Positions 32,215-48,088 of a DNA stretch of 64,000 bases are shown one piece after another. Numbering within the stretch: the first letter of the stretch is position 1; each line of letters starts with the position of its first letter. A program made the translations under genes and the position numbers. The notes under the pieces are model-generated. The model did not search any database and had not been told where the DNA came from. It worked only from the letters and a program-made list of their open reading frames with translations. Origin of the DNA: Cyanophora paradoxa CCMP329 (Eukaryota > Plantae > Glaucophyta); the NCBI GenBank assembly GCA_004431415.1, contig QPMI01000017.1, positions 372,001-436,000 of the forward strand, in the 5' to 3' direction.

Positions 32215-35200
32215 TCAGAGGTAGAAGAGCTTCTCGGCGAGGGCGCGGAGGTGCGTCTGGTAGGCCCGGAGCGTGTCCGCGGAGGGCCCGTGCGACCCCT
32301 CCGCGTACACTGCCTCCTCGAAGCGCTGGGGGGGGGGGTAAGAGGGGGGGGTACAGGAGGGGACGAGGGCGAGGGGTACCACGGCGAGCTTCTCGGCGTA
32401 CTTGAGGGGCGCGGGGACTGCCCGGGAGGGGTCAGGGCGCGGCGCGGCCGAGAGGGGAGAGGGGGGACCAGCGGACCGCGGATGGGCCCCGCCCAACCGA
32501 AGCTGCGGCGGCGGTCAGCGAGGGTTCCGAGAAGGCGGGGGGAGTGCAGAATGGAGGGGGAAGGGCGCACTAGGCCTTGGCGAGCTCGTTGGTGGCGCGG
32601 CTGACGGTGCGCATGCCGCCGCGCACGAGCGCCGCGTCGATGGGGTCCGTCAGCAGCTCGTACCGCGTCGGCTTCGCCGCCCCTGCCGGCCCCGCGCAGC
32701 GCTCAGCGGGGGCGCGGAGGAGCGGGCCCGGCGCGCGCACCGGAGGGGGCCTTGTGGGAGATGAGGAAGAACTCGCGCTCGTTCTCCTGCGCGGGGGCGG
32801 CCGCGCGTGAGGCGGCCGAGCTGGAGGGGAGGGCGAGGGGCGGGGCGGGGCGGCCTCGCACCATGACGACCTCCTGGTCGATGCAGGTGCCGGGCTCCGG
32901 GTCGCCGGGGTCCCGCTCCTTCTGCAGGGGGCGTCAGGCGGCGCCCGGGCGGCGAGGGCGCGCGCTTGCGGCGGCGCGCACGGTCAGGTCTGCCGCAAGG
33001 GGCGCGGGGCGGGCGGCGTCAGCGCGCGCGGGGGCCGGAAGCGGCGGGCGGGGGCAAAGAGAGTAGCGGAGCACCGCCCCAGACGTTGAGATGGACCCTG
33101 CGGAGCGGGCCGGGCGGCGCTGGGGTCAGCCAAGCTCAACACCTGCCCCCGGAAATGAAGGCAGGCGCGGGCACCTCTTGGAGACGAGGAAGATGTGCAC
33201 GTCGGGGACCTTGCCCCTGGATCAAATTTAAAGCGGGCGTAAGCGGAGGATTCGCGGGAGGGCGGGCGGCGGGCGGGCGGCGGGCGGACAGGCGGAGGCG
33301 GCAGGCCTCGCGGAGGGCGAGGCCCTCGTTCCTGGCGATCGCCGCCTGGCCCCCGGCCCCCTTCGCGTTCTGCCGCCCCGCGCCCGTCAGGCTGAGGCCG
33401 CCCAGCTGCAGGCGCAGGCGGGGCCCCAGGGACGGCGCTGGCGCGCCTCTCGGTAGACGATGATGCGGGCGGGCGCCTGCGCGGCGCCGCCGGGCGCCCT
33501 GGGCCTGTTCGCCGGCGCGCGCGCCCACGCGTCGACTGCGCGGCCCATCGCCTCGGTGAGCTCGAGGACCTGCCCCGTCTGCGGCGCCTGCCGCGAAGAT
33601 TGGCGCCCGCCCACAGGCGAAGATTAACGTGAAGGGATCGGTGGCGCACGAAGGAGAGGACCTCGGAGTAGTAGGCGGCCCCCGAGTCGTCCGTCGAGAC
33701 CGTGATTGCCGCCGTGCGCGCCCTGCGGCGCACTTCAGAACACATCGAGAAGCGCGTCCGCGCCGCCAGTTCGCGGCGCACTTGACGATGGTGAGGCCGA
33801 CGTACATCGTGCCCCGCAGCTCCTCCGGCAGCTGCGGCGGCGCCGCGCCGACCGGCCACGTCAGGAGCCAGCGCGGCGAGCCGAGGGCTAGGAGAGGCGG
33901 GAGGCAGGGTGCACCGGGACCTTCCAGAGAGCCCCGCCCTCCTTGCACACGATCTGGCGGGGGCGCGCCGGGCGCTTCAGAGGCGAGCAGGGGCGAGCTC
34001 GAGGGGGCGGCAGGGGAGTCCAACCTGGCCGAGCAGCCCGACTGCGGCATCCCTCCACTTGTCGCCGTTGACGGTCCTGCCGCGAGAGACTCGCTTCGAA
34101 AAGCAGGGAAGGAGGCGGGTGCAGGAGAGGAAACCGAATCCCAGCGCACTCGGGTCTGACGAACTGGGAGGGGCACTGGAGGCGGAAGAGGAGGTGGCGG
34201 GAGAGCTCCGGGTAGAAGCCGGCGTCGTGGCGGCCCGGGAGCAGCACGACCACCGCGTCCGGCGCCCCGCCCCTCCTCGTCTCCTGCGCGCGCAACGCCG
34301 CTTCGAATTCGCCGGGAGATCGCGGCTGGAGGCCGGCGGGCAACACGCACCGCTTCGAGCGCCGTGATGAAGTTCGCGGCGGACTTCCCGCCCACCACGA
34401 CCGGCACGTTCTCCCACGTCTTGTTCAACAGCTCCTGCGTCCGCTGCGTGTGGCGAGTGCGTTTGACGCGAGCTCGAGTCTCCGGGCGAGCGCCAAGGCA
34501 CATCCGTGGGCACACACCCGCAGGAGGTCCCGCTCGATCGTCCTTGCCGTGTTCTCCGCGCCCTGCTCGTACAGGACGAAGATGCGCCGGTTCTTGAACT
34601 CCGGCGCGACCGCCGGCTGGTTCTTCCCGATCTCCTGGCGCCAGTTGATGCCGACGGACTGCCGCCCCCCGTTCCCGAACGTGAGCGTCGTCCGCGACGG
34701 CCCCACCTCGACCTGCAGGGCACGGTCCCGAGTCAGCCGGGCTGGGCAGCACGCGACTTCGACTCCGGCGCCCTGCGGCGCACCTGGAACTTGACCATAT
34801 TTTCCGCCACGGAGAGGCCCGTCTGCGCCCCGCGGCGTGAGAGATGGTGCATGGTGCCGCCCACGGGCGCGCACGGCTTCCAAGAGGGCCTTCTGTTCCG
34901 GCTCTGCTCCGAGCTGCTCGAGCCGGAATTTCTGGAGGTCCTGCGGGGGCAACGATTTGAACGTTAACGGGGTCCGGCCGGGGGCGCTGCGGGGCGCACG
35001 TCGTGCTTCCAGCGGGAGCCGCGGAAGTTGTCGCCCCGCGGCTTCGTGAACTTGGCCACCTCCCGCGTGATCTGCCGCTTGTCGCTCTCGTCCTCCGGCT
35101 TGTTCTGCGCGCCGCGTCATGATCAAATCAGGGAAATACCGATGGATGCGCAAAAGAGCACCACGCAGGCGAACTGGGAGAGCAGGAAGACCTGCGAAGA

Positions 35201-38001
35201 AGCGGGGCGATCACGATCACTACGGGAAGAAGGCGGTCGCGAAACGGATGGAGCGACGTTGCGCGCACCTCCATCGGCTCCTCCTCGAGCTCCTCGCCGC
35301 GCGCGGCGGCCTCCTTCCGCCGCTGCCGCCGGGCGAGCTCCCTCTCGTGCTCGAGCCACGCCTGCGAGGTGCGGAGCTCGGGGGCCGGCGGCTGCGCGAG
35401 GCCGTTGAGGTCCGCCGACGCCTCGATCGTCTCGACGTCCCCCGCCGCCGGCGCGCTCGCCCGTGCCGCGAACTGCTGGACGAGGCGCGCGTCCGCCTGC
35501 TGACGCGTCTCGCCGCCCTCCGCCGGCGGCCGCGGCCGCCGCCTCCGCGGCCGCGTCCAGGCCCGCAGGATCGGCTGGGTGGGGGGGTCCACGGAGACCT
35601 GCGCCGGGGTCTCGATTCCTGGGCAGAGAAAGACCGCCGAGATCTCAAACGTGACCTTGTACTCGTCGGTGACGTGCTTGCGGAACGAGACCTCCCTGTT
35701 GTTCTTGATGAACGTCCTGCAGGCGGAAACCAGGGCGTCGGCCGCGGTGGGCCGAGCTCGAGCTCAAAGCAGCGGCGCGCTGCGCGCACGACTCGCAGGT
35801 CTTCTCCCAGGCGACGGGCTCCTTCGGGTCCAGGTCGTACACGCGCTCCTGCAGCACCATGCGCCCGTCCGTCCGGTTGCAGTACCTGCGCCGCTGTGAG
35901 AACGGGCGCCCAAGCCCAGCGCGGGGAGGCGCACCTCATGTAGACGGTGTAGCCCTTGCTGGCGTAGTCCCGCAGCCTCCTCGTGAACTCGGCCCTGGCC
36001 TGCGCGGGGGAGGAGGTGGAGCGCTCCAGCTCCCTCCACTCGTCGTACGCCGTCTCTGCCGTCGGGGCCGTCGGCGGGCGCCAGATGGGACGTGCACGCG
36101 GGCGGGCGGGCGGGGCGCACGGAGGCGGAGGACGCGCCACTCGCGCTCCAGTTGGATCTGGCGGCGCGGTGAGAAGACCGGGCAGGAGGGCCGCGGGGAC
36201 GGGCGGGCGGGGACCATGAGGCCGCCCTGGGTCTTGAGGATGCTCGTGAACATGCCCTTCCTCAGCATGAAGCCGCGCACGTTGAACGCCTGCTGCGAGC
36301 GGTCCTCGATCATCTTCCGCCCGTAGCTCGTGTAGTCTGCGCGCGCGCGGCGACGTCCGTCAGATATAGATCTGAAATCGCGTGAGTTTGGTCGCTACAG
36401 CGCACTCTTTGCGTAGCTGATGAGCCGGCGGTTGGCGAGCCGCTGTGGCGGGACGAAGCGGCTTTAGTTGCGCCGGCGGCGCGGCCTCAAAGCGAGAGCT
36501 CACGAGGAAGTGCTCGCAGACTGGCTGCTCCGGGGAGAAGACGTAGTCCTTGATGTACTGGAAGTTGACCTGGATGCGGTCCCCGTCCTGCGGGCTTCTC
36601 AGCGGGCGCGGGCGCGATCGCGAAGTGGGATCGGAGGGGCGTGCCGGGTCGGAGCTGTTGGTGATCGCGCACTTGACGCGCTCGACCCTCTCGCGGACGT
36701 CCGGGAAGGGCGGGTTGACGAGGTAGAGGACGGTGGGGTTGCGCGGCGCCCGGTTCGTGAGGAGGAGCGGCTGGGGCCACTCCCGCGTGGCCTGGAGGGC
36801 CCACGGGCGCAGCCGCCTCGCGACGCCCTCGAGCGCCGCCTCGCGCATGTCCGTCCCCTCCACGTCCGGCGTCATGAAGACGGCGAACTCGAAGACCCGC
36901 GGCTGCCGCTGCTTCTCCGCCGGGGCGGACTGCGCGGGCGGTCAAGGCCGACGCCGCGCAGGCAGAGGGACGGCGAAGCACCGTCTTCCACATGTTCACC
37001 GTCACCTCCAACCTCCTGGCGCCGCCGCCCCCGGCCTCCCAGCCGCCGCCCCCGCGCCCCCCGCCCCCGCCCCAGCCGCCGCCGCCGCCGCGGCCGCCGC
37101 CTCGGCCGTGGTGGCCCCCTCCGCGGCCGCCGCCGGAGCCCTCCCCGCGGCCCCCGTATCCGGAGCCGCCGGCCCCCCGGTCCCCGCTGGAGCTCGAGCC
37201 GCCGCGCGGGTCGTACCCCCCCGGGCCTCCCGCCTCGAGCCGGGGCCGCTTCTCCTCCCGGTCGCCCCCGCGCTGCTGGCCGCGGTCTTGGTTGAGAAAG
37301 CCGCGCTCCAGGCCCCGAGGGCGATCACGGTCTTCCTGCCGCGGCTGCTGGCGCTGCTGCTGCTGATCGTACTGCTGCTGATGGGCGGGGGCGGGGGCTT
37401 GGCCGTAGCCTGGAGGCACCGCAGGGTAGCCATGAGAGGGCGGCTGCTGGCCATGGCCGTAAGCAGGCGAAGACTGCTGGGAAGCGGCCAGAGGTCCCGA
37501 AGCTGGTGGCATCTCAGTTAGGCTGGCAAGAAGCTGCTGCAGCTCTATGGCGGCAGAAAGATTTGCTGGCGGTGCTGGGCCATGGGCAGCCCCGAAGCCG
37601 CTCGGAGCGGCCGGGGCTGGCTGCTGGCCGTACGCGTGCGGCTGCGCGTACTGGCCAGCATGACCGTGCGCGTACGGCTGCTGCCCTCCGTATTGCTGCC
37701 CGCCGTATCCTTGCTGCAGCTGCCCGCCGTACGGCTGCTGTCCGCCGTATCCGTGCAGCTGCTGGCCGCCGTATGGCTGCTGCCCGTCGTACGGCTGCTG
37801 TCCATATATGTAGCCTTGTGCGTTTCCGCCCGAGCGCGAGCTCGCCTGCAGAGCACGCCATGAGCGCCGAGAGGCCGCGCGACGACGAAAGCGGGTGTCT
37901 CTAACCTGAAGTCCGGGCGGCGGATAGTGCTGTCCTTGAGCATGCTGACCAGGAGGCGCCGCCGGCCAGCCAGGCGGCGGACCATGGCCACCAGGATTCA
38001 T
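32215..38001 (-). CDS. PIWI-like Argonaute with substituted catalytic tetrad
   Basis: Q/G/Y-rich and RG-rich N-terminus, LEVTVNMW, a PAZ-like region, MID motifs FYPELSR...CPSQFV and QIVCKEGGALWKV, PIWI motifs TMYVGLT, ARIIVYRE, PGTCIDQEV, EFFLISH, AKPTRY and VPAPLKYAEKLA, ending KLFYL*. Confidence 0.85.
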
Positions 38002-38360: not shown

Positions 38361-41300
38361 ATGCCTGGGCAGCCGACGGCGATGGACGGGCGCGCGGTCG
38401 AGTCGTCATGGGCAGCACCCCAGGAGCTGAAGAATGCCTTGCAAGTCCTATCTACCCACGCGGCAGTGTTCCTGCGACGGGTTCTCATCGAGAAGCACGG
38501 AGGCGACGGAGACGGCAGAGCGGGCGTCAATGCAGGCGACGCTAACGTGAAACGCATCGCTCTCTTGTTCACCAGGAAATATGCACGTATCAAGTGCCGC
38601 CGCGTCGCAAGAGAACACTCAGAGGCTGATCGTTCTCTCGCAGGTGGAACTGCGCCTCGAGAAGATCGCGGGGGGCCGGTGCATGAGCGGCAAGCTACAC
38701 AGGACGCTCGACATCGTCGCGCTGCTGGATCTCCGCCAGACCGGAAACGCCGAGATTCATGTCGGCTGCAAGGTGTGCTGCCTCGAGTCGGCTGCCTTGC
38801 CGCTAGCTCGTCGACGTCCTGCTGACCCGCGTCTGTCTTCGAAGGACTGTGGCACGGATTTCCTTCTGCTGGCGAGCGGCCGCACCCTCAAGGACGTGTA
38901 CCGGATGACGAGGGGCCGCCCGCAGCGTGCGCACCCCTATGCGGGCCCCCGGTGGGCGCCTCACGGCGCCCCGCAGGCATGAGCGTGGACGCTGAGCTCC
39001 GGCCGTGCATCGCGGCCCTCGCGCGGGCCGTGGAGGCCTGCGAGCGCGACCCGAGGCTCTCCCCGCAGGAGCGCGACCGCTTCCTGATCCTCCTCAAGAA
39101 CGGGCGGCCCTGCGCCCCGGTCCGGACCATCAAGAGCGAGGACTGCCTGCCCCGCGACGAGCGCCACGAGCTGGCGCGCCCGCCGCACGCCGCCGTGGCC
39201 ACCCGCGCGCGGCGCCTCGCCTCTGACGCACGCGCGCGCGGCGGCGCAGTACGCGGCGCTGGGGCGGGCGATGCACGCGTACGCGCCGGAGGGGAAGGGC
39301 GTGGACCGGCACATCGGGCTGCTGCGGAAGCGGGGCCTGCCGCCGGGCCTCCTCGAGACTCTGCTCGGCAGCGAGTTCTTCTTCACCTTCGACGACCGCG
39401 CCGTGCGCGCCCGCACCGCCCGCCGCCCGCCGCCCGCCGGCGCCCGTCGCGAGGCCGGGGCGCAGGTGCCAGACCTGGAGGAGCTCGCGCGCGGCAAGCG
39501 CTGGCACATGCTCCCCGGCGTGGACGCCAGCGGCGGCCGCGCGGCCATCCCGGGCGGTGCGGCGCCGCCCCCCCGGCCCGGCCCGGTCCGCCCCGGGGCC
39601 GACGCGAGCAGGCCCGGCGTGGCGGGGCCTGTTCATCCCTGCGATGGACGCCCAGCAGCGGGTCCTGGCGGGCCAGGTCAAGCCCTTCGCCTCGACCGCG
39701 GGACCCGCCCTCAACGTCCCCAAGCGCGCCCGACCTCCGCCCCGCCCCGGCCCGAGCGAGCGCGCGCTCCTCGCCGCCTCCGCCGCGCTGACGCCGGCCG
39801 ACCAGGTACTCGACGTGCGGGGCGTCGAAGCGGATGCCGTGCTTCCTCCTCCCCGAGCTCGACATGAGCCCGCCCAACTTCGTCTGGGTCCCCGAGACCC
39901 TCCCCGGGGACCGCAGGCCGTCCGCCCCCCTCCCCGCCCCGCCATCGCCCCCGCCCTCGCCGCCCCCGCCCACGCGGCCGGGAGCACAGCTGGTTGGGCC
40001 TCACGGAGGGCGGGCTGAAGTCGGCCACCACCGCCGCCTACTTCCAGATACCCGTCTTCGGGGCCGGCATGTGCGCCCGCCCCGCCCGCCCCGCCCCGCC
40101 TGGCGGCCCCGCGTGTAAACCGGGCGGGGCGCAGCGGCTGCGGGGGCGACTTCTGCGCCTCGCTGCCCTTCTTCAGGGACGCCTTCCGCTCCCTGCAGGC
40201 CCGCTTCGGCACCAAGCACGTGCGCCGCCCTCCCCCCGCGCCCTCCGCGCCCTCCGAGGGGCCCGGCAGGTGGTCTTCTTCCCGGACGCCGGCTGCTTCG
40301 AGAACGCGCAGGTGGCGCGCCGCAACGCCGAGACCCTCCTTCTCTTCCGCGACGAGCTCGGGTACCCCGCCCCGCAGCCAGGCCGCCCCGACCCGCGCCG
40401 CCTCATGATCACGGCTCGCCCCGGCAGGGTGGAGCCGTCGGTGGCGTGGTGGCCCTGGCTCTGCTCCGCCGACGCCGACGCCGCCGGCCAGCGCAACATC
40501 GGTCCGCCCGCCCGCCCCGCCCTTCGAGCTCCGCCCCGTCGCTGCGCTCTGCCCTCTCCGAGCGCGCAGACGACTCAGCGACTTCGTCCGCGGCGCAGAC
40601 GACTTCCTGGCGAAGGTGGTGAACTTCCGGGGCGTGCAGCTGATCTCGGCGGGGAGCTTCTGGGCGACGCACGAGGCGGCGGCGCGGGACCCGAACCTCG
40701 GCGACGAGCTCCGCCGGCGCCGCCTGGAGGCCTGGGAGGCCGTCGTCGCCGCCGTCCCCTCCGAGGTCCCCCCGCCCCCTCCCGCCCCGCCCCGCGCTGC
40801 GCCTCTTCGCTTAGCCGGCCCCGCCCCGGCGCAGGCGCAGCGGACGCGGAACGTGGCGCCGCCGGCCCCGTGGCTGCTGCGCGTGTACGAGCCGATGGCG
40901 GAGGGCGCCGAGGGGGCGCTCACCGTGTGCGAGGTCTTCCCGGAGGGCGCGCCGCCGCCCATCCAGCACCGCGAGCCGCCCCGCCGCCGCCCGCCCGCCT
41001 CCGGCTCCGGCGACCTCCTCGTCGAGAGCTCCGCCCCTCCGCCGGCCCCGCCCCTCGCCCCGGTGACCGCGCCGACCGTCATCACCCACGTGGCCATCCA
41101 CCACACCGTGCGCTCCGCCCCGGGCCCGCCTCGCCTCGTCCGCCCCCCGGGGCCTGACCCGCCTCCCTCCCGCAGCCGCCGCCGAACGGCTGGCACCCGC
41201 AGGGGCCGGCGCCCGACCAGTCGGGCGTCAGCGTCGCGGCCTGGCAGCAGCAGCCGTACTCTGCGCCCGCGCAGCCGGCGCCGATGGAGGCCCAGCGCTG

Positions 41301-44300
41301 GGAGCCGCAGCCGCCCGCGCAGTACACCAGCGGCAGCAGCAGCGGCAGCAGCGTCAGCAGCGGCGGCAGCAGCAGCAGCGCGCCGGCGGCGGGACAGCCG
41401 GCGGGGGCGGGGGCAGCGCGGCAGCCGGCGCATCGGCGCGTCTCGTTTGCAGAGGGCGGGAGCGGGGCGGGCGGCGAGGCCGGGCCCGGGGCCGGGGCGC
41501 GTACCGGAGCGTGCCGCTGGCGTACGGCGACGACGGGGAGCCGCGGGGCGGGGGCGGCGGGCGCTCGCGGGCGGGGCCGTCGGGCCTCGGGAGGCGGGCG
41601 GGGGCCCCGCCGGAGCACCCGCAGGCTTCCAAGCGCTCCTGCCCGCAGGCCCTCTCCGAGGCAGAGGTGAGAGGGCGGCCCGCCCCGGGCCCCGCGGACG
41701 CCGACGCCGCCGCCGACTCGGCCGGGCAGCAAATCGAGCGGGCGCTGCGGGCGTCGCTGAAGGAGAAGGAGGCGCTGGAGCGGCGGCGCGCCGCGGAGGC
41801 CGACGAGGCCGAGGCCTTTGGCGATCTCGAGGAGGCACCCGCCCCGCCCCGCCCCGCGCGCGCCCGCCGCCGACGCCGCCGCCGACTCCGGCGCGCAGGA
41901 GCTGGAGCGGGCGAAGCGGGAGTCGCTGCGGGAGGCGGAGGAGCAGGCGCGGCGGCGGGCGGAGGGCGCGGACGACGCGGAGATGGAGCAGCTCAGCGCC
42001 GTCCTCTCGGAGAGCGAGCGCCTCCACCGCGAGGAGCAGGAGCGCCTCGCCGCCCAGTGCGCCTCGGCCCTCCCGGCCTGGCCCGTCCCGGCCCGTCCCG
42101 CTGACGGCGTTGGGTCGCGGGGGCAGGGCGGCGGGGGAGGAGGAGGCGGAGGTGGAGCTGGCGAAGGAAAAGAGCGCGCTGGCGGCGGTGGAGGAGGCGG
42201 AGGTGCGGGAGGCGCTGCGGCTCTCGCAGGTCCCCGAGCGGCTGCGGCGGGCCGTCGAGGCGCAGTTGGGGCGGCGGGCCCCCGCCGGCCCCGAGGCCTA
42301 CCTCGACCTCGACGACCTGAGGGACGGCGGCGGCGGCGGGGGCGGCGGGGGCGGCAGCAGCGACGAGGAGGCGGGGCCGACTCGGACGGCGAGGAGCCGG
42401 CCTGGCGCTGCTCGGACGCCGCCGCGGGGGCCGGCGCCGGCGCCGGCGTCGGCGTCGGCTGGCTCCCCGCCGCGGCCGCCTCTCAGCCCCACGGGGAGGA
42501 GGAGGCGCTGCCCGCCGCGCCGCACACCCTCACGGCGTTCTCGAGCGGGGCGCGGCCGGCGGCGGCGGGGGGCCGCGCAGGGGGCGGATTACGCCATGAT
42601 CCGGCTGGAGGCGGCGCAGCGGATCATGGAACGCCAGGGCTGGCACCCCGGGGAGCCCCTGGGGCGCCGCGACCGCCCGGACGCCCTGGGCCCGGGCGAC
42701 GTCGTTCCCGTCGCCGAACACGTGGCGGGGCAGCTCGACCGCCGCGGCGTCGGCGTCCCGGGGCCCCTCGTCCGCGCCCAGCCGGCCCCGCCCCCGTCCC
42801 CGCGCGCCCTCTCCCCGTACCCGCCGAGCCGGCTCCCGCCCCGCCCCCGCCCCCGTGCCCGTGTCCGTGCCCGGGCCTTCCGGCTATGGCGAGCCGGCCC
42901 TGCCGCCCCTCGCCGGCAGCTTCCACCCCGCCGCTCTCGCGCCCCCGCACGGAACCGGCCCCGGCTTTGCCCCCGTCGCCGCCGCAAACGCCGCGGCGGC
43001 GGTGCCGCACGGGGCGGGGGCGGCGGGCTGCCGGCACCCGGCGCAGTGCTGCGCGCGGCTGCACGCGCTGGAGGCGCCGTTCGTCGCGCTGGACGCGGCG
43101 GTGCGCTGGGCGGCGGTGCTGGCGATGCAGGCCGAGGTCGAGGCCGCCCTCCGCTGGCTCCTCTTCGCCGCCTGGCTCGCCCACCCGCCCGCCCGGCCCC
43201 CGCCAAGGCCCCCGCCCCGGCCCCGCCTCCCCTGCCGCACTCCTGCCCGCCCCGCGCCCCGCTCCGATCGTCCCTCCCGCGTACCCCCCTCCATCAGCGG
43301 CCCCATCGAACCCCCGCAAGGGGCCTCATCGTACCCCCCTCCAGCGGCCCCATCGTACCCCCGTCAGCGGCCTCATCGCACCCCCTCCAGCGGCTTCATC
43401 GTACCCCCCGCCAACGGCCTCATCGTACCCCCCTCCAGCGGCCTCATCGTACCCCCCTCCAGCGGCCCCATCGTACCCTCCGCAAGGGGCCCCATCGTAC
43501 CCCTCGCAAGGGACCTCATCGTACCCCCCGCAAGGGGCCTCATCGTACCCCCCGCCCGCGGTCGCTGCCTCTTTTCCTCCGGCGTACCCCCCGCCAGCGG
43601 CTCCCCCGTCCTGGGCCGTCGCGGCCCCCGCGGTGCCCGCCGTCGCCGCCCCTGCGCCCTCCCCGGCGCTCCGGGCTCCCCGCGGGCCCGTCCCGGGTCC
43701 CTCCTCGGCTCCCGCTGTACCCCCGCCCGCTAGGCCGTCGGCGGCGGCGGAGGCGGAGGAGCGGGGTACGCTCTATGCCCACGAGGTCATCTTCGACCCC
43801 CCGATCTGCGTGCGCCTCCGCCCCTGCCCCTTGCCCCGCCGCGCCCGACCCCGCCCCCGCAGGCTTACCCGAAGGATTACCTTGGCGGGCGGGCCTTCCG
43901 CACGTACCACCTCCTCACGCGGGAGCCGCTCGAGGCCCCGCTCGAGGCGTTGCCCGTCGAGCGGGGCCCGCCCCGCCGGGTGACGCTGCGGCCGCTGGGG
44001 CCCGTCGAGCTGGGCGCCCGCGAGCTGGCGGCGGTCCGCCGGCTGAACGCAATGTTCGACGCGCGGCTCCCGGCGGACAAGAAGGACCCGAACTACGGCT
44101 ACATGCCGCGCCACGCCGGCCGCCTCGCCTCTGACCCGGACCCGCCGCTCCTCTCCCCGCGCTTCGCCGCCCCCGGGGCGCCCTACGACGAGCCCGAGCT
44201 GCGGGACGAGGCGCTGCAGGCGGCGCTGCTCGAGGCGGCCGCCGGCTTCGCGGCGGGGCGGCCCCGCGTGCTCGAGCTGCTCGCGGCGCAGGAGCGGGAG

Positions 44301-47119
44301 GGGCCGGGCGGGGCCTGGCGCCCCGCCCTCCGCGCCCTGCTGGAGGACGCGCTGGTGCGGAACGAGCACAGCGGGCAGGTGCACCCCATCGGCCGCGTCG
44401 ACTTCGAGTCCAGCGTCGCCTCGTGCCGCGCCTTCTCGGGGCCCCGCGCCCCCCGCACCACCCTCGTCGAGTACTACGAGGCCAAGGGCCGCAAGGCGGA
44501 GGAGGAGGAGCGGGCGCGCGGCCTCGAGCCGCGGCCCCGGCCCCGCCTCCGCTTCCCCCGCTCCCCGCCCCTCCGCGAGTCCGAAGCCGGCTCCGACGCC
44601 CGCGTGCGTTCCTCGCCCTCGCACCCCGGCCTGCGCCTCTGACTCCCCCTCAGATCGCCCCGGAGCTCTGCGCCGTCCACACGGGCATCACCGGTGCCCC
44701 CGCCCCGCCCCACGCGCCGCCCCGCGCCGACGCGCACTCGCGCGCGGCAGCGTCGATGCACGACGGGGCGGCGTGGCTCCTCGACGGCCTCCACGTCCTC
44801 CTCCAGCGCTCCGCCGCCGCCGCCGTGCGCCCTCTTTGCTCGAGTCCTGAGGGGTGGAGGGTCCTGACGCGCCGGGGCAGGCGGTGCGGCGGGTGCGGGG
44901 GATGCTGGGGATGGGCGAGCGGCCCTTCGCCCGCCCCGACCTCCTCGCCGCCGCCATGCGCCACAGCAGCGCCCGCGCGGAGGCGCCGGCGCCGGCCGGC
45001 GGGGCGCCGGCGGCTGCGCCCGGGGCGGAGGCGGACAGCGAGCGGCTGGAGTTCCTGGGAGACCGCCTGGTCGCCTACGTCGTGCGGCGCGCCCTCGTGC
45101 TGGGCCTCCCCCGCCTCTCCGCGCACGCCGCCGCCGCCCTCTCGCACGAGCTCTGCCGCAACGCGACCCTCGCCCGCGCCGCCGCCGCCCTGGGCCTGGA
45201 CGAGGCGCTGGAGCGGGGCAGGGGCCAGGTCGCCGCCTCCGAGAAGATGCGCGCCGACGCGCTCGAGGCGCTGGCGGGGGCGCTGTTCCTGTCGGAGGGC
45301 CTCCCCGCCGCCCGCCGCTTCCTGCTCGCCGCCCTCCTCGCCCCCTACGAGGAGCTCGACCCGCGGGCGCCCCACGCGCACAAGGTCTCCGCCCTCGCCC
45401 GCCGCGCCCTCGCCGCCGCCCCGGACGCCCCGCTCCCCTCCCCCGCCCTCCCCGCCTTCGCCCCCGCCGGCGGGCCCGGGGCGAGCGAGGCGGAGCTGCA
45501 GGCGGCGGAGTTCGTGGAGCAGACCGTCGGCCACGCCTTCCGCGACCGCGGGCGCCTGCTCGAGGCGCTGCGGGGCGGCCCGGCGGCGGCGCGCCTGGCG
45601 GCGCTGGGCCAGCCGGCCCTCGAGCTCTGCGCCGCCGTCCACCTCTTCGGCTCCCACCGCGGCGAGGCCCCCGGCGGCCTCCAGGACCTCATGCGCGTCG
45701 CCGTCCAGGCGGCCCCGATCCGCGCCCGCTGCGCCCAGACGCTCCTCCTCCCGGGGGCCCTCGCCGCCGCCCGCAAGGGCCTGGGCACGCCCGAGGCCTC
45801 CGCGGAGGGGGCGCGGCTCGCGGACCCCCGCGCCGTGTACGAGGAGGGGGCCGGCCAGGGCGAGCTCGTGGGGGCGCTGGCGGCCCTCGCGGGGGCGCTG
45901 GCCTGCGAGGGAGAGCCGTCGCTCTCCGCCCCGCCCCCCGCCTGCGCCCACTGCGCCTGCGACCTCCCGGGGCACCTCTTCCACAAGTGAGCCGCGCGTA
46001 CCCCCTCCGGCCCCTCCCCCCTCAGCCCGCCTCCCCCGCAGGCTGCTGGCGTGGATCCACCAGGGGCGGCTGGACCCCGGCGAGGAGAACAGGGCGGCCC
46101 GCGAGGCCCACATGCAGGCGCGCCCGCCCTCGCCCCCCTCGCATTTCCCCGCGTGCCCTGAGGCGTCGCGCTCCGCGCGTGGCGCGCAGGAGCCGATCGA
46201 GGGGTGGCAGGCGGCGGGGATGTCGCCCTTCGGGGCGTACGTGCCGCCCTACGAGCTCCCCACCGAGGCCGAGGCGCGGGAGGCGCAGGCGGCGGCCGAG
46301 GAGGCCCGCCGCGCCGCCGCCCGCGTCCGCTTTGTCCCCGCCACGGGCTCTGGCTCCTCCTCGGCGGGCGCCGGCGCCGGGGCCGGCGGCGGGACCCGGG
46401 GCGCCGCGGCCGCCCCCACCGGCGCCAACGCCACGCCCCTCGGGCCGGCCCGGCCCCGGCCCCGTCCCCGGCCCCGGCCTCCGCCCCGACCCCGCTGCCG
46501 CCCGCCCCGGAGCCCTCCGCCGCCGCCTCCGCCTCCGCTACGGCGCCCGCCCCGTCGGGCGCGGCGGGGATGCTGGGGGCGGCGCTGGAGGCGGCGCGGC
46601 AGGTGGCCGACCTGCTCAACGCGGGCCTCAGGGGCGGCTCCCTCCCCCCGCCCAGGCCGCCCCCAAGTACGCCGCCGCCGCCGCCGGCCTCCGGCGGGCC
46701 CTGCGCGAGTGCGGCGGGGCGGGCCCGTGCGGGAGGCGGCGGGGAGCTGGGCGGCACCTCGTGAACGCCGCCCTCACGGGCGTGAGGGGCGGCCTCGTGC
46801 CGCAGGCCGAGGCCTGGGCCCGCGAGGCCGTCGCCGTGTACGAGGGCCTACCCGCGGGCGGGGCGAGGGGCGGGCGAGGCGGGCCTGGAGGGGCGCGCCT
46901 GCAAGGCCTGGTTCGTCCTGGCGCGGGCCCTCGAGGCGCAGGGGCCCGGGCGCGCGGCGGAGGCGGCCGCCGCCGCGGGGCGGGCGGCCGCGCTCCGGCC
47001 CGAGGACGGCGACGCGGCCGCCCTCGCCCGCCGCCTCGCCGCCGCCGCCGCCGCCGCTGGGGCCTTCCGATGAGGCGCTCTGGGGCAAGGTGGATCCGCT
47101 CTATTTTGCTTGCAAATAG
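38361..47119 (+). CDS. Dicer-like protein with N-terminal primase-like TOPRIM domain, UIM-like repeats, G-patch, platform-PAZ-connector, RNase IIIa and degenerate RNase IIIb
   Basis: TOPRIM-like LGLTEGGLKS...VVFFPDAG...VAWW...NIDD; UIM-like EQIERALRASL and EVREALRLSQ; G-patch AQRIMERQGWHPGEPLGR...DRRGVG; PAZ/connector LEDALVRNEH...TLVEYYEAKG...IAPELCAVH; RNase III SERLEFLGDRLV...ADALEALAGALF. No AT-rich intergenic gap lies inside, but several low-complexity segments need extra introns or frameshifts. Confidence 0.75.
43270..43560 (+). repeat. About 21-bp coding minisatellite encoding S-S-Y-P-P-P/Q-A/G heptads inside the Dicer-like gene
   Basis: Repeated cctcatcgtaccccc(t)ccagcgg/gcaaggg units, translating as ASSYPPPTASSYPPPAASSYPPPAAPSYPPQGAPSYPSQGTSSYPPQG. 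Confidence 0.85.
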
Positions 47120-47577: not shown

Positions 47578-47740
47578 CTTGCGCAGCGCGACGCTTTTCG
47601 TGTTGAACACATGTGCGCCGCTCGTACCCCCCTCCCGCCCCCCCTCCCCGTGTATCCCTCACATTCCCCCTCCCCGCCTTCAGACTACGATCCGGACCCC
47701 GGCAGCGTACACCTCTCGGGGGGAGACTACGTGCGTTCCC
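47578..47740 (+). pseudogene. Isolated duplicated fragment (two micro-exons plus intron) of the K+ channel gene
   Basis: Near-identical to 50916-51078 (cttgcgcagcgcgac(g/a)cttttcgtgttgaacacat...ggagactacgtgcgttcc) with scattered substitutions. It is followed by a poly-C run of about 59 nt. Confidence 0.8.
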
Positions 47741-47741
47741 C

Positions 47742-47805
<64 letters not shown>

Positions 47806-48088
47806 AGCCCCCCGCGACAGCCCCGTCAACAGGCTATCGTACTCATGTACATGGCCCGGTGGCCACGTGCACTGGGGCCTTGATGAGCTGGCCACCATCA
47901 AGCGATGAAGGACCGGCGGCCGATGATCACGGATTCAGGGAGTCATGATCATGATCATGAAACCGTCGGACCAGCGGGCAGTCCCCAAGCTCTAAGTCTG
48001 CCTTCGTTGCTGTCTACAGATCGAGAATCACACTGTGACATGCATGCAAGTGCCGCAGTGCGTGGCCGCTGTGATGCGGGGGGAGGGG

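Follow-up and report, generated by a model that had tools for sequence, protein, structure and literature searches.

Dicer is defined by its use of two RNase III domains for two staggered cuts. Every RNase III domain cleaves a single strand, and in the dimer the two sites face the two strands of double-stranded RNA (dsRNA) across the minor groove; in animal Dicer, it is RNase IIIa that handles the 3' arm. In this study, we analyzed a gene of the glaucophyte alga Cyanophora paradoxa CCMP329 that encodes a tandem pair of RNase III domains, the first (RNase IIIa) with intact catalytic residues and the second (hereafter pseudo-RNase IIIb) apparently catalytically dead. The gene lies in a stretch of 64,000 nucleotides of contig QPMI01000017.1 (assembly GCA_004431415.1, positions 372,001 to 436,000, forward strand), which is referred to as the window and whose first letter is position 1 of all coordinates below. 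We estimate the chances as about even that the two domains form a Dicer-like module in which they pair within one chain and cut only one strand of dsRNA.

Pairing of RNase III domains with one dead site has precedents in KREN/KREPB4 of trypanosomes, Dcl1 of Paramecium and the IIIb mutants of human DICER1. First, the trypanosome proteins KREN1-3 and the pseudoenzymes KREPB4 and KREPB5 combine a catalytic with a degenerate RNase III domain, for which one-strand cutting has been proposed (PMC5648035, PMC5416837). In domain pattern the Cyanophora protein can be likened to KREN/KREPB4, with one catalytic and one degenerate domain and the conserved glycine kept; however, KREN and KREPB are separate proteins in a large complex that acts on mitochondrial mRNA-guide RNA duplexes, whereas the Cyanophora halves are fused. 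Second, Paramecium tetraurelia Dcl1 has mutated IIIb residues and is presumed to be inactive (PMC5871716). Dcl1 differs in being a recent duplicate of an active Dcl2; it has neither PAZ domain nor N-terminal additions, and no relationship between it and the Cyanophora gene was found by an exhaustive HMMER search. Third, hotspot mutants in IIIb of human DICER1 leave 5p arms uncut and spare the cutting of 3p arms (10.1101/2025.10.15.682667), and artificial Escherichia coli RNase III heterodimers in which a single site is live produce nicks in one strand, according to work cited in PMC5648035. Both resemble the Cyanophora module in being RNase III dimers with one live site (a predicted dimer in Cyanophora), but the DICER1 mutants are a matter of somatic disease and the E. 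coli heterodimers were engineered, so that neither is an evolved wild-type state. Finally, Mucor R3B2, which cuts single-stranded RNA, and budding-yeast Dcr1 are noncanonical RNase III-family enzymes of RNAi-type pathways that, as proposed here for the Cyanophora protein, do not follow the scheme of a tandem module dicing both strands (PMC8136814, PMC7827160).

The exhaustive HMMER search, with the 378-amino-acid (aa) open reading frame (ORF) at 44854-45990 (+ strand) as the query, returned one near-identical protein of 2263 aa (P0005; E 2e-217). Its source name is EukProt EP00741_Cyanophora_paradoxa_P003658, tig00000093_g3555.t1, from Cyanophora paradoxa. This database record, and parts thereof, served as the spliced protein, and the exon ends derived from it are accurate to 1-2 nt (split codons). 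Both RNase III domains lie within a single exon at 44881-45987 (+; aa 1610-1978), in a region of approximately 80% G+C; the window overall has 58-80% G+C.

The first domain is an unambiguous RNase III domain. It matched Pfam PF00636 with an E value of 1.4e-18 (68 bits; cut-off 27) and NCBIfam TIGR02191 with 2.3e-21 (76 bits, under the full-length cut-off of 166), reached 122 bits against a local profile built from 106 bacterial RNase III proteins, and had E. coli RNase III, Drosha and Giardia Dicer among its PDB sequence matches. The earlier note, which was made from the DNA letters, had claimed that the acids of this domain are kept in SERLEFLGD near 45040 and RADALEAL near 45250. This was borne out: both motifs are present (45037-45063 and 45250-45273, respectively; frame 1, +), and the residue table gave all five acids, E1663 (45040), E1666 (45049), D1670 (45061), D1735 (45256) and E1738 (45265).

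The second domain contains EFVEQTVGHAFRDRGRLLEAL at 45508-45570, AARLAALGQ at 45586-45612 and LVGALAALAGA at 45865-45897 (all frame 1, +). In alignment A1, which comprises the query region and 15 tandem RNase III proteins, three of the IIIb core columns are occupied by E, D and E in 15 of 15 proteins, and the fourth by D in 14 (the remaining one has N). The query has A1849 (45598), Q1853 (45610), G1940 (45871) and A1943 (45880) in the core columns and A1846 (45589) at the auxiliary Glu position, and it retains R1847, G1852 and L1864, which are invariant in A1. Thus, the residue table together with the predicted fold upheld the second claim of the earlier note, that the IIIb scaffold is kept and the acids are lost (ARLAALGQ, VGALAALAGA). 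One caveat comes from alignment A3, which aligns the upstream D1924 (45823-45825) with the catalytic Asp, a placement that requires 16 inserted residues within the catalytic helix; one acid could be spared in this way. The structural model, unlike A3, places the LVGALAALAGA stretch in one continuous helix (residues 326-342). On these alignments, at most one of the four core acids could be argued to be kept and three are gone under any alignment, and the loss of three of four acids would inactivate an RNase III site. A further alignment, A2, to which bacterial single domains had been added, paired the IIIb domains of the comparison proteins with the query IIIa and was discarded. The end of the domain (45895-45985, aa 1948-1978) is a low-confidence insertion with a Cys/His cluster (C, then CAHCAC, then H..H), which may bind a metal ion.

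Profile alignment, named in the earlier note as a check on the two domains, gave a divided answer for the second one. Its match to Pfam PF00636 was weak and below the cut-off (E 0.044, 15 bits), and the local bacterial RNase III profile gave 6.3 bits. Drosophila Dcr-1 IIIb matched with an E value of 0.16 and was collinear from the N-terminal helix through the signature motif to the helix after it. On the other hand, a IIIb-only profile from which the query had been excluded scored the domain at 10.5 bits, whereas 2000 composition-preserving shuffles reached no more than 6.1, so that the homology is greater than expected by chance. G+C at the first, second and third codon positions (GC1/2/3) was 0.864/0.586/0.994 in pseudo-RNase IIIb and 0.867/0.589/0.989 in RNase IIIa; this equality indicates that pseudo-RNase IIIb is read in this frame as ordinary coding sequence.

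Structure prediction from the 378-aa ORF as a single sequence was uninformative, with a predicted local distance difference test score (pLDDT) of 39.5. When AlphaFold2 was supplied with A1, the 401-residue module was modeled with a pLDDT of 75 and a predicted template modeling score (pTM) of 0.80, the second domain reaching a pLDDT of 83-93. The top Foldseek ranks for this two-domain model were Dicer and Drosha structures. Superposition of the whole model on tandem modules with VIA-align was best for Arabidopsis DCL3 (Z 30.4, root-mean-square deviation 3.6 Å over 328 residues), followed by Drosha (Z 29.9), mouse Dicer (Z 28.5) and Giardia Dicer (Z 22.9), and single bacterial RNase III domains reached Z values of only 17-18 over approximately 140 residues. 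The matches to DCL3, Drosha and Dicer extended over about 320 residues. Therefore, both domains and their mutual packing are predicted by the model to match the intramolecular RNase III dimer of Dicer and Drosha. G1852, the glycine of the signature motif and an invariant column of A1, is kept in pseudo-RNase IIIb; in the noncatalytic domain of KREPB4, the corresponding glycine is indispensable and is thought to permit dimerization (PMC5648035). The coordinates of the gene and of its module are given in the following table.

Table. The Dicer-like gene and the parts of its RNase III module (positions in the window)
Feature	Position	Strand	Basis and remarks
Whole annotated gene tig00000093_g3555.t1	38361..47070	+	29 exons, introns 50-170 nt; P0005 100% identical to the window exon by exon
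Exon with platform/PAZ-like region (aa 1325-1571)	43863..44603	+	ends in LVEYYEAKG, motif by eye; GC1/2/3 0.82/0.56/0.98
Two small exons, 44654-44692 (IAPELCAVHTGIT) and 44750-44824 (helix-like)	44654..44824	+	P0005 exon map; join the PAZ-like region to RNase IIIa
RNase IIIa (aa 1624-1789), catalytic residues intact	44923..45420	+	Pfam, NCBIfam, local profile, PDB matches
Interdomain linker, Pro/Ala-rich, predicted disordered	45421..45486	+	pLDDT <50 at model residues 183-199
Pseudo-RNase IIIb (aa 1812-1978)	45487..45987	+	alignment A1, shuffle test, pLDDT 83-93, fold match, GC3 0.994
Next exon (LLAWIHQGRLDPGEEN...), C-terminal helix after pseudo-RNase IIIb	46041..46117	+	donor AAG/GTGAGC 45986/7, acceptor cag/ 46040

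We then compared the protein with Dicer and Drosha beyond the catalytic core. Like the minimal Dicer of the Giardia intestinalis type, DCL3 and Drosha, it carries a tandem of RNase III domains on a single chain, with a predicted intramolecular dimer; like the minimal Dicer, it lacks a helicase and has, upstream, a helix and two PAZ-like motifs. The motif pair, recognized by eye in the upstream exons, consists of LVEYYEAKG and, after approximately 40 residues, IAPELC, which is the pattern that ends Dicer PAZ domains, and a helix-like exon lies between the PAZ-like region and RNase IIIa. However, the module differs from those of Dicer and Drosha in that its second domain is without the metal-binding acids and that it has neither a dsRNA-binding domain (dsRBD) nor a profile-detectable PAZ domain, and the N-terminus of the protein, which resembles proteins of cyanobacterial plasmids, sets it apart from both. 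Upstream of RNase IIIa, no PAZ domain was found by searches of Pfam and of PDB sequences. A language-model look-up of aa 1325-1612 returned PAZ/Dicer_platform clusters (0.94, 169 shared features), and with the core alone it returned Vps4_C, so that the look-ups conflict. Helicase, DUF283 and dsRBD were not detected, the Pfam scan of all 2263 aa reporting RNase III families only, and Pfam likewise found no dsRBD in the C-terminal 285 aa. The DExD/H helicase, DUF283, C-terminal dsRBD and two competent sites of a canonical full-length Dicer were thus not recovered in the Cyanophora protein, nor were the dsRBD after the tandem and the two active sites of Drosha. The earlier note had spoken of a Dicer with a PAZ-measured cut. 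The tandem RNase III module and the predicted Dicer/Drosha fold agree with this, whereas neither the Pfam nor the PDB sequence search returned a PAZ domain. Overall, "Dicer-like" is a fair description of the catalytic module, and the label "Dicer" is partly supported.

Searches for relatives returned little beyond the gene itself. Among 1.84 billion representative proteins, the best other match had an E value of 1e-12 and covered RNase IIIa only. Three word-index protein searches returned either weak bacterial RNase III matches or the gene itself, and the best eukaryotic sequence matches included Drosha. In two of the 15 proteins of the comparison set, the metagenomic tandem RNase III proteins P0095 and P0071, the first domain is degenerate (2-3 of 4 core acids lost) and the later domain is intact. 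Their order of degenerate and intact domains is the reverse of that in Cyanophora, and shows that asymmetric tandems exist elsewhere.

Nicking of dsRNA appears to be the most likely mechanism. RNase IIIa and pseudo-RNase IIIb of one chain would pack as the usual intramolecular RNase III dimer, in which the dead domain would be the structural, RNA-binding half, and the resulting dsRNA-binding cleft would have one metal-ion site instead of two. Provided that RNase IIIa is paired in-chain with this domain, which lacks a metal site, one active site would be left, and the module would bind an A-form duplex and cut only one of its strands, a behavior shown or proposed for KREN/KREPB4, the E. coli heterodimers and IIIb-defective human Dicer. 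By analogy with animal Dicer, this strand would be that of RNase IIIa, the 3' arm, and the product would be a nick with a 5'-phosphate and a 3'-OH, not a duplex with 2-nt overhangs. Whereas the domain identities, the loss of the acids, the coding-type codon periodicity and the predicted tandem fold are results of the analysis, in-chain pairing in the real protein, one-strand cutting, the choice of strand and any measuring from an RNA end are inferred. The small RNAs of C. paradoxa, which are mainly 21 nt long and strongly strand-biased per gene (PMC3700990), provide circumstantial support for nicking, since a one-strand Dicer would predict strand-biased 21-nt RNAs.

Several points weigh against one-strand cutting by an in-chain dimer. 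Argonaute loading explains the strand bias as well. In pseudo-RNase IIIb (RLAALG), Ala replaces the "ball" Phe of the signature motif, so that half of the usual ball-and-socket interface is gone. The predicted packing leans on an alignment of tandem proteins only and on Dicer and Drosha structures learned by AlphaFold. The searches described above returned no PAZ domain or dsRBD through which a substrate would be bound and measured. Finally, no orthologue or paralogue in which the dead domain might be conserved was found by the exhaustive HMMER search or the three word-index protein searches.

The earlier note had proposed a dsRNA nickase, and one intact domain, one acid-less domain and a predicted in-chain dimer fold are what such an enzyme would present; single-strand cutting itself is still deduced from these, and the note had left out an arrangement that should be weighed against it. 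The RNase IIIa domains of two molecules may pair, as in bacterial RNase III or budding-yeast Dcr1, to form a two-site center for cleavage of both strands, with the dead domain as an accessory for RNA binding or spacing. All single-domain RNase III enzymes function as homodimers, and dicing by dimers is known for noncanonical Dicers that have a single RNase III domain (PMC7827160); moreover, RNase IIIa retains the signature motif in full, with the ball Phe, and its nearest sequence matches are homodimeric bacterial enzymes. We nevertheless regard this arrangement as unlikely, as the model seats the dead domain on the dimer face of RNase IIIa (pTM 0.80) with predicted Dicer/Drosha geometry, and the short 25-residue linker and the kept scaffold residues suit in-chain pairing. 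The same predicted occupancy bears on pairing in trans, by which RNase IIIa would join the RNase III domain of another protein in a two-site heterodimer. RNase III proteins of the editosome do swap partners (PMC5648035), but the domain on the same chain would be the obvious occupant of the interface, and we consider a partner in trans quite improbable.

The protein might also be an inactive or regulatory paralogue that binds dsRNA, provides a scaffold or exerts a dominant-negative effect, or its gene may be in early decay. Paramecium Dcl1, with its mutated catalytic residues in the second domain and supposed inactivity (PMC5871716), would be a parallel; the HMMER search found no orthologue that could reveal purifying selection, and parts of the gene model are doubtful, with weak GC3 periodicity at 42921-43583 and 46515-46910. 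However, a first domain with every catalytic residue and 122 bits is unexpected for a dead protein, and codon periodicity is strong across both domains, so that this explanation seems to us rather doubtful. Far less credible still is an error of assembly, sequencing or annotation by which a normal IIIb would merely seem to be dead. At 80% G+C the region is hard to sequence, and all six frames are open, but the five separate substitutions fall exactly at the catalytic columns of an otherwise collinear, in-frame domain. Five separate codon changes at these columns with a GC3 of 0.994 rule out a frameshift or random read error as their source. The public gene model is identical in sequence as well, although it probably comes from the same assembly.

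Further features were noted in the gene and its surroundings. GT..AG introns at 44604-44653 and 44825-44880 flank the block of two small exons, which may form a connector helix before RNase IIIa. Downstream of pseudo-RNase IIIb, a helix at model residues 365-375 crosses the exon junction, with low confidence there. Third-position G+C is 0.86 in exons 42921-43583 and 46515-46910, compared with 0.93-1.0 in the other exons, and the frame or the boundaries in the public gene model may be incorrect at these two places; an alternative frame across 43100-43600 reads as PHRTP-type proline repeats. Exons in 41730-42760 resemble acidic helices of the UIM type (ELERAKRESLREAEE...) and include a stretch similar to a G-patch (AQRIMERQGWHPGEPLG...DRRGVG), neither of which was reported by the Pfam scan of the whole protein. 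A run of about 25 Pro codons at 47740-47830, just 3' of the gene, is a low-complexity CCN repeat that is open in several frames. Near the N-terminus, 39469-40700 (aa 275-510 of P0005) is similar to hypothetical proteins of Acaryochloris and Calothrix plasmids (25-31% identity, about 27%; best E 3e-7). These cyanobacterial-plasmid hypothetical proteins are its sole match, and a primase/TOPRIM reading of the N-terminus received no support from Pfam or PDB sequence search. On the opposite strand, 32700-36950 (-) contains patches of strong coding periodicity with MID-/PIWI-like Argonaute motifs recognized by eye. Pfam was blank on these upstream minus-strand ORFs except for a weak ArgoL1 match (E 0.17). 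Together, these features suggest an Argonaute-family gene in head-to-head orientation with the Dicer-like gene.

A more specific role can be sketched for one-strand cutting, although we hold it to be improbable as a whole. Anchored on a duplex end, a strand-selective Dicer would repeatedly nick one strand of a long dsRNA and release single-stranded 21-nt RNAs with a 5'-phosphate, sparing the template strand. The target strand might, for example, be newly made by an RNA-dependent RNA polymerase or by a putatively primase-like N-terminal part of the protein itself. Such activity would account for the strand-biased 21-nt exonic small RNAs of C. paradoxa (PMC3700990), which could feed the candidate Argonaute-like gene in head-to-head position.

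If a wild-type Dicer-like enzyme has indeed kept the dimer with one cutting site, small RNAs could arise from one strand only, with no duplex intermediate and no strand-selection step. Glaucophytes are a deep branch among plastid-bearing eukaryotes, and to our knowledge their RNA silencing has hardly been studied. The gene described here is one of few RNase III candidates for the abundant strand-biased 21-nt RNAs of glaucophytes. It would also be a single-chain counterpart to the enzyme-pseudoenzyme pairs of trypanosomes that is testable with one recombinant protein. Its main interest is therefore that it may represent an evolved single-chain case in a deep-branching alga.

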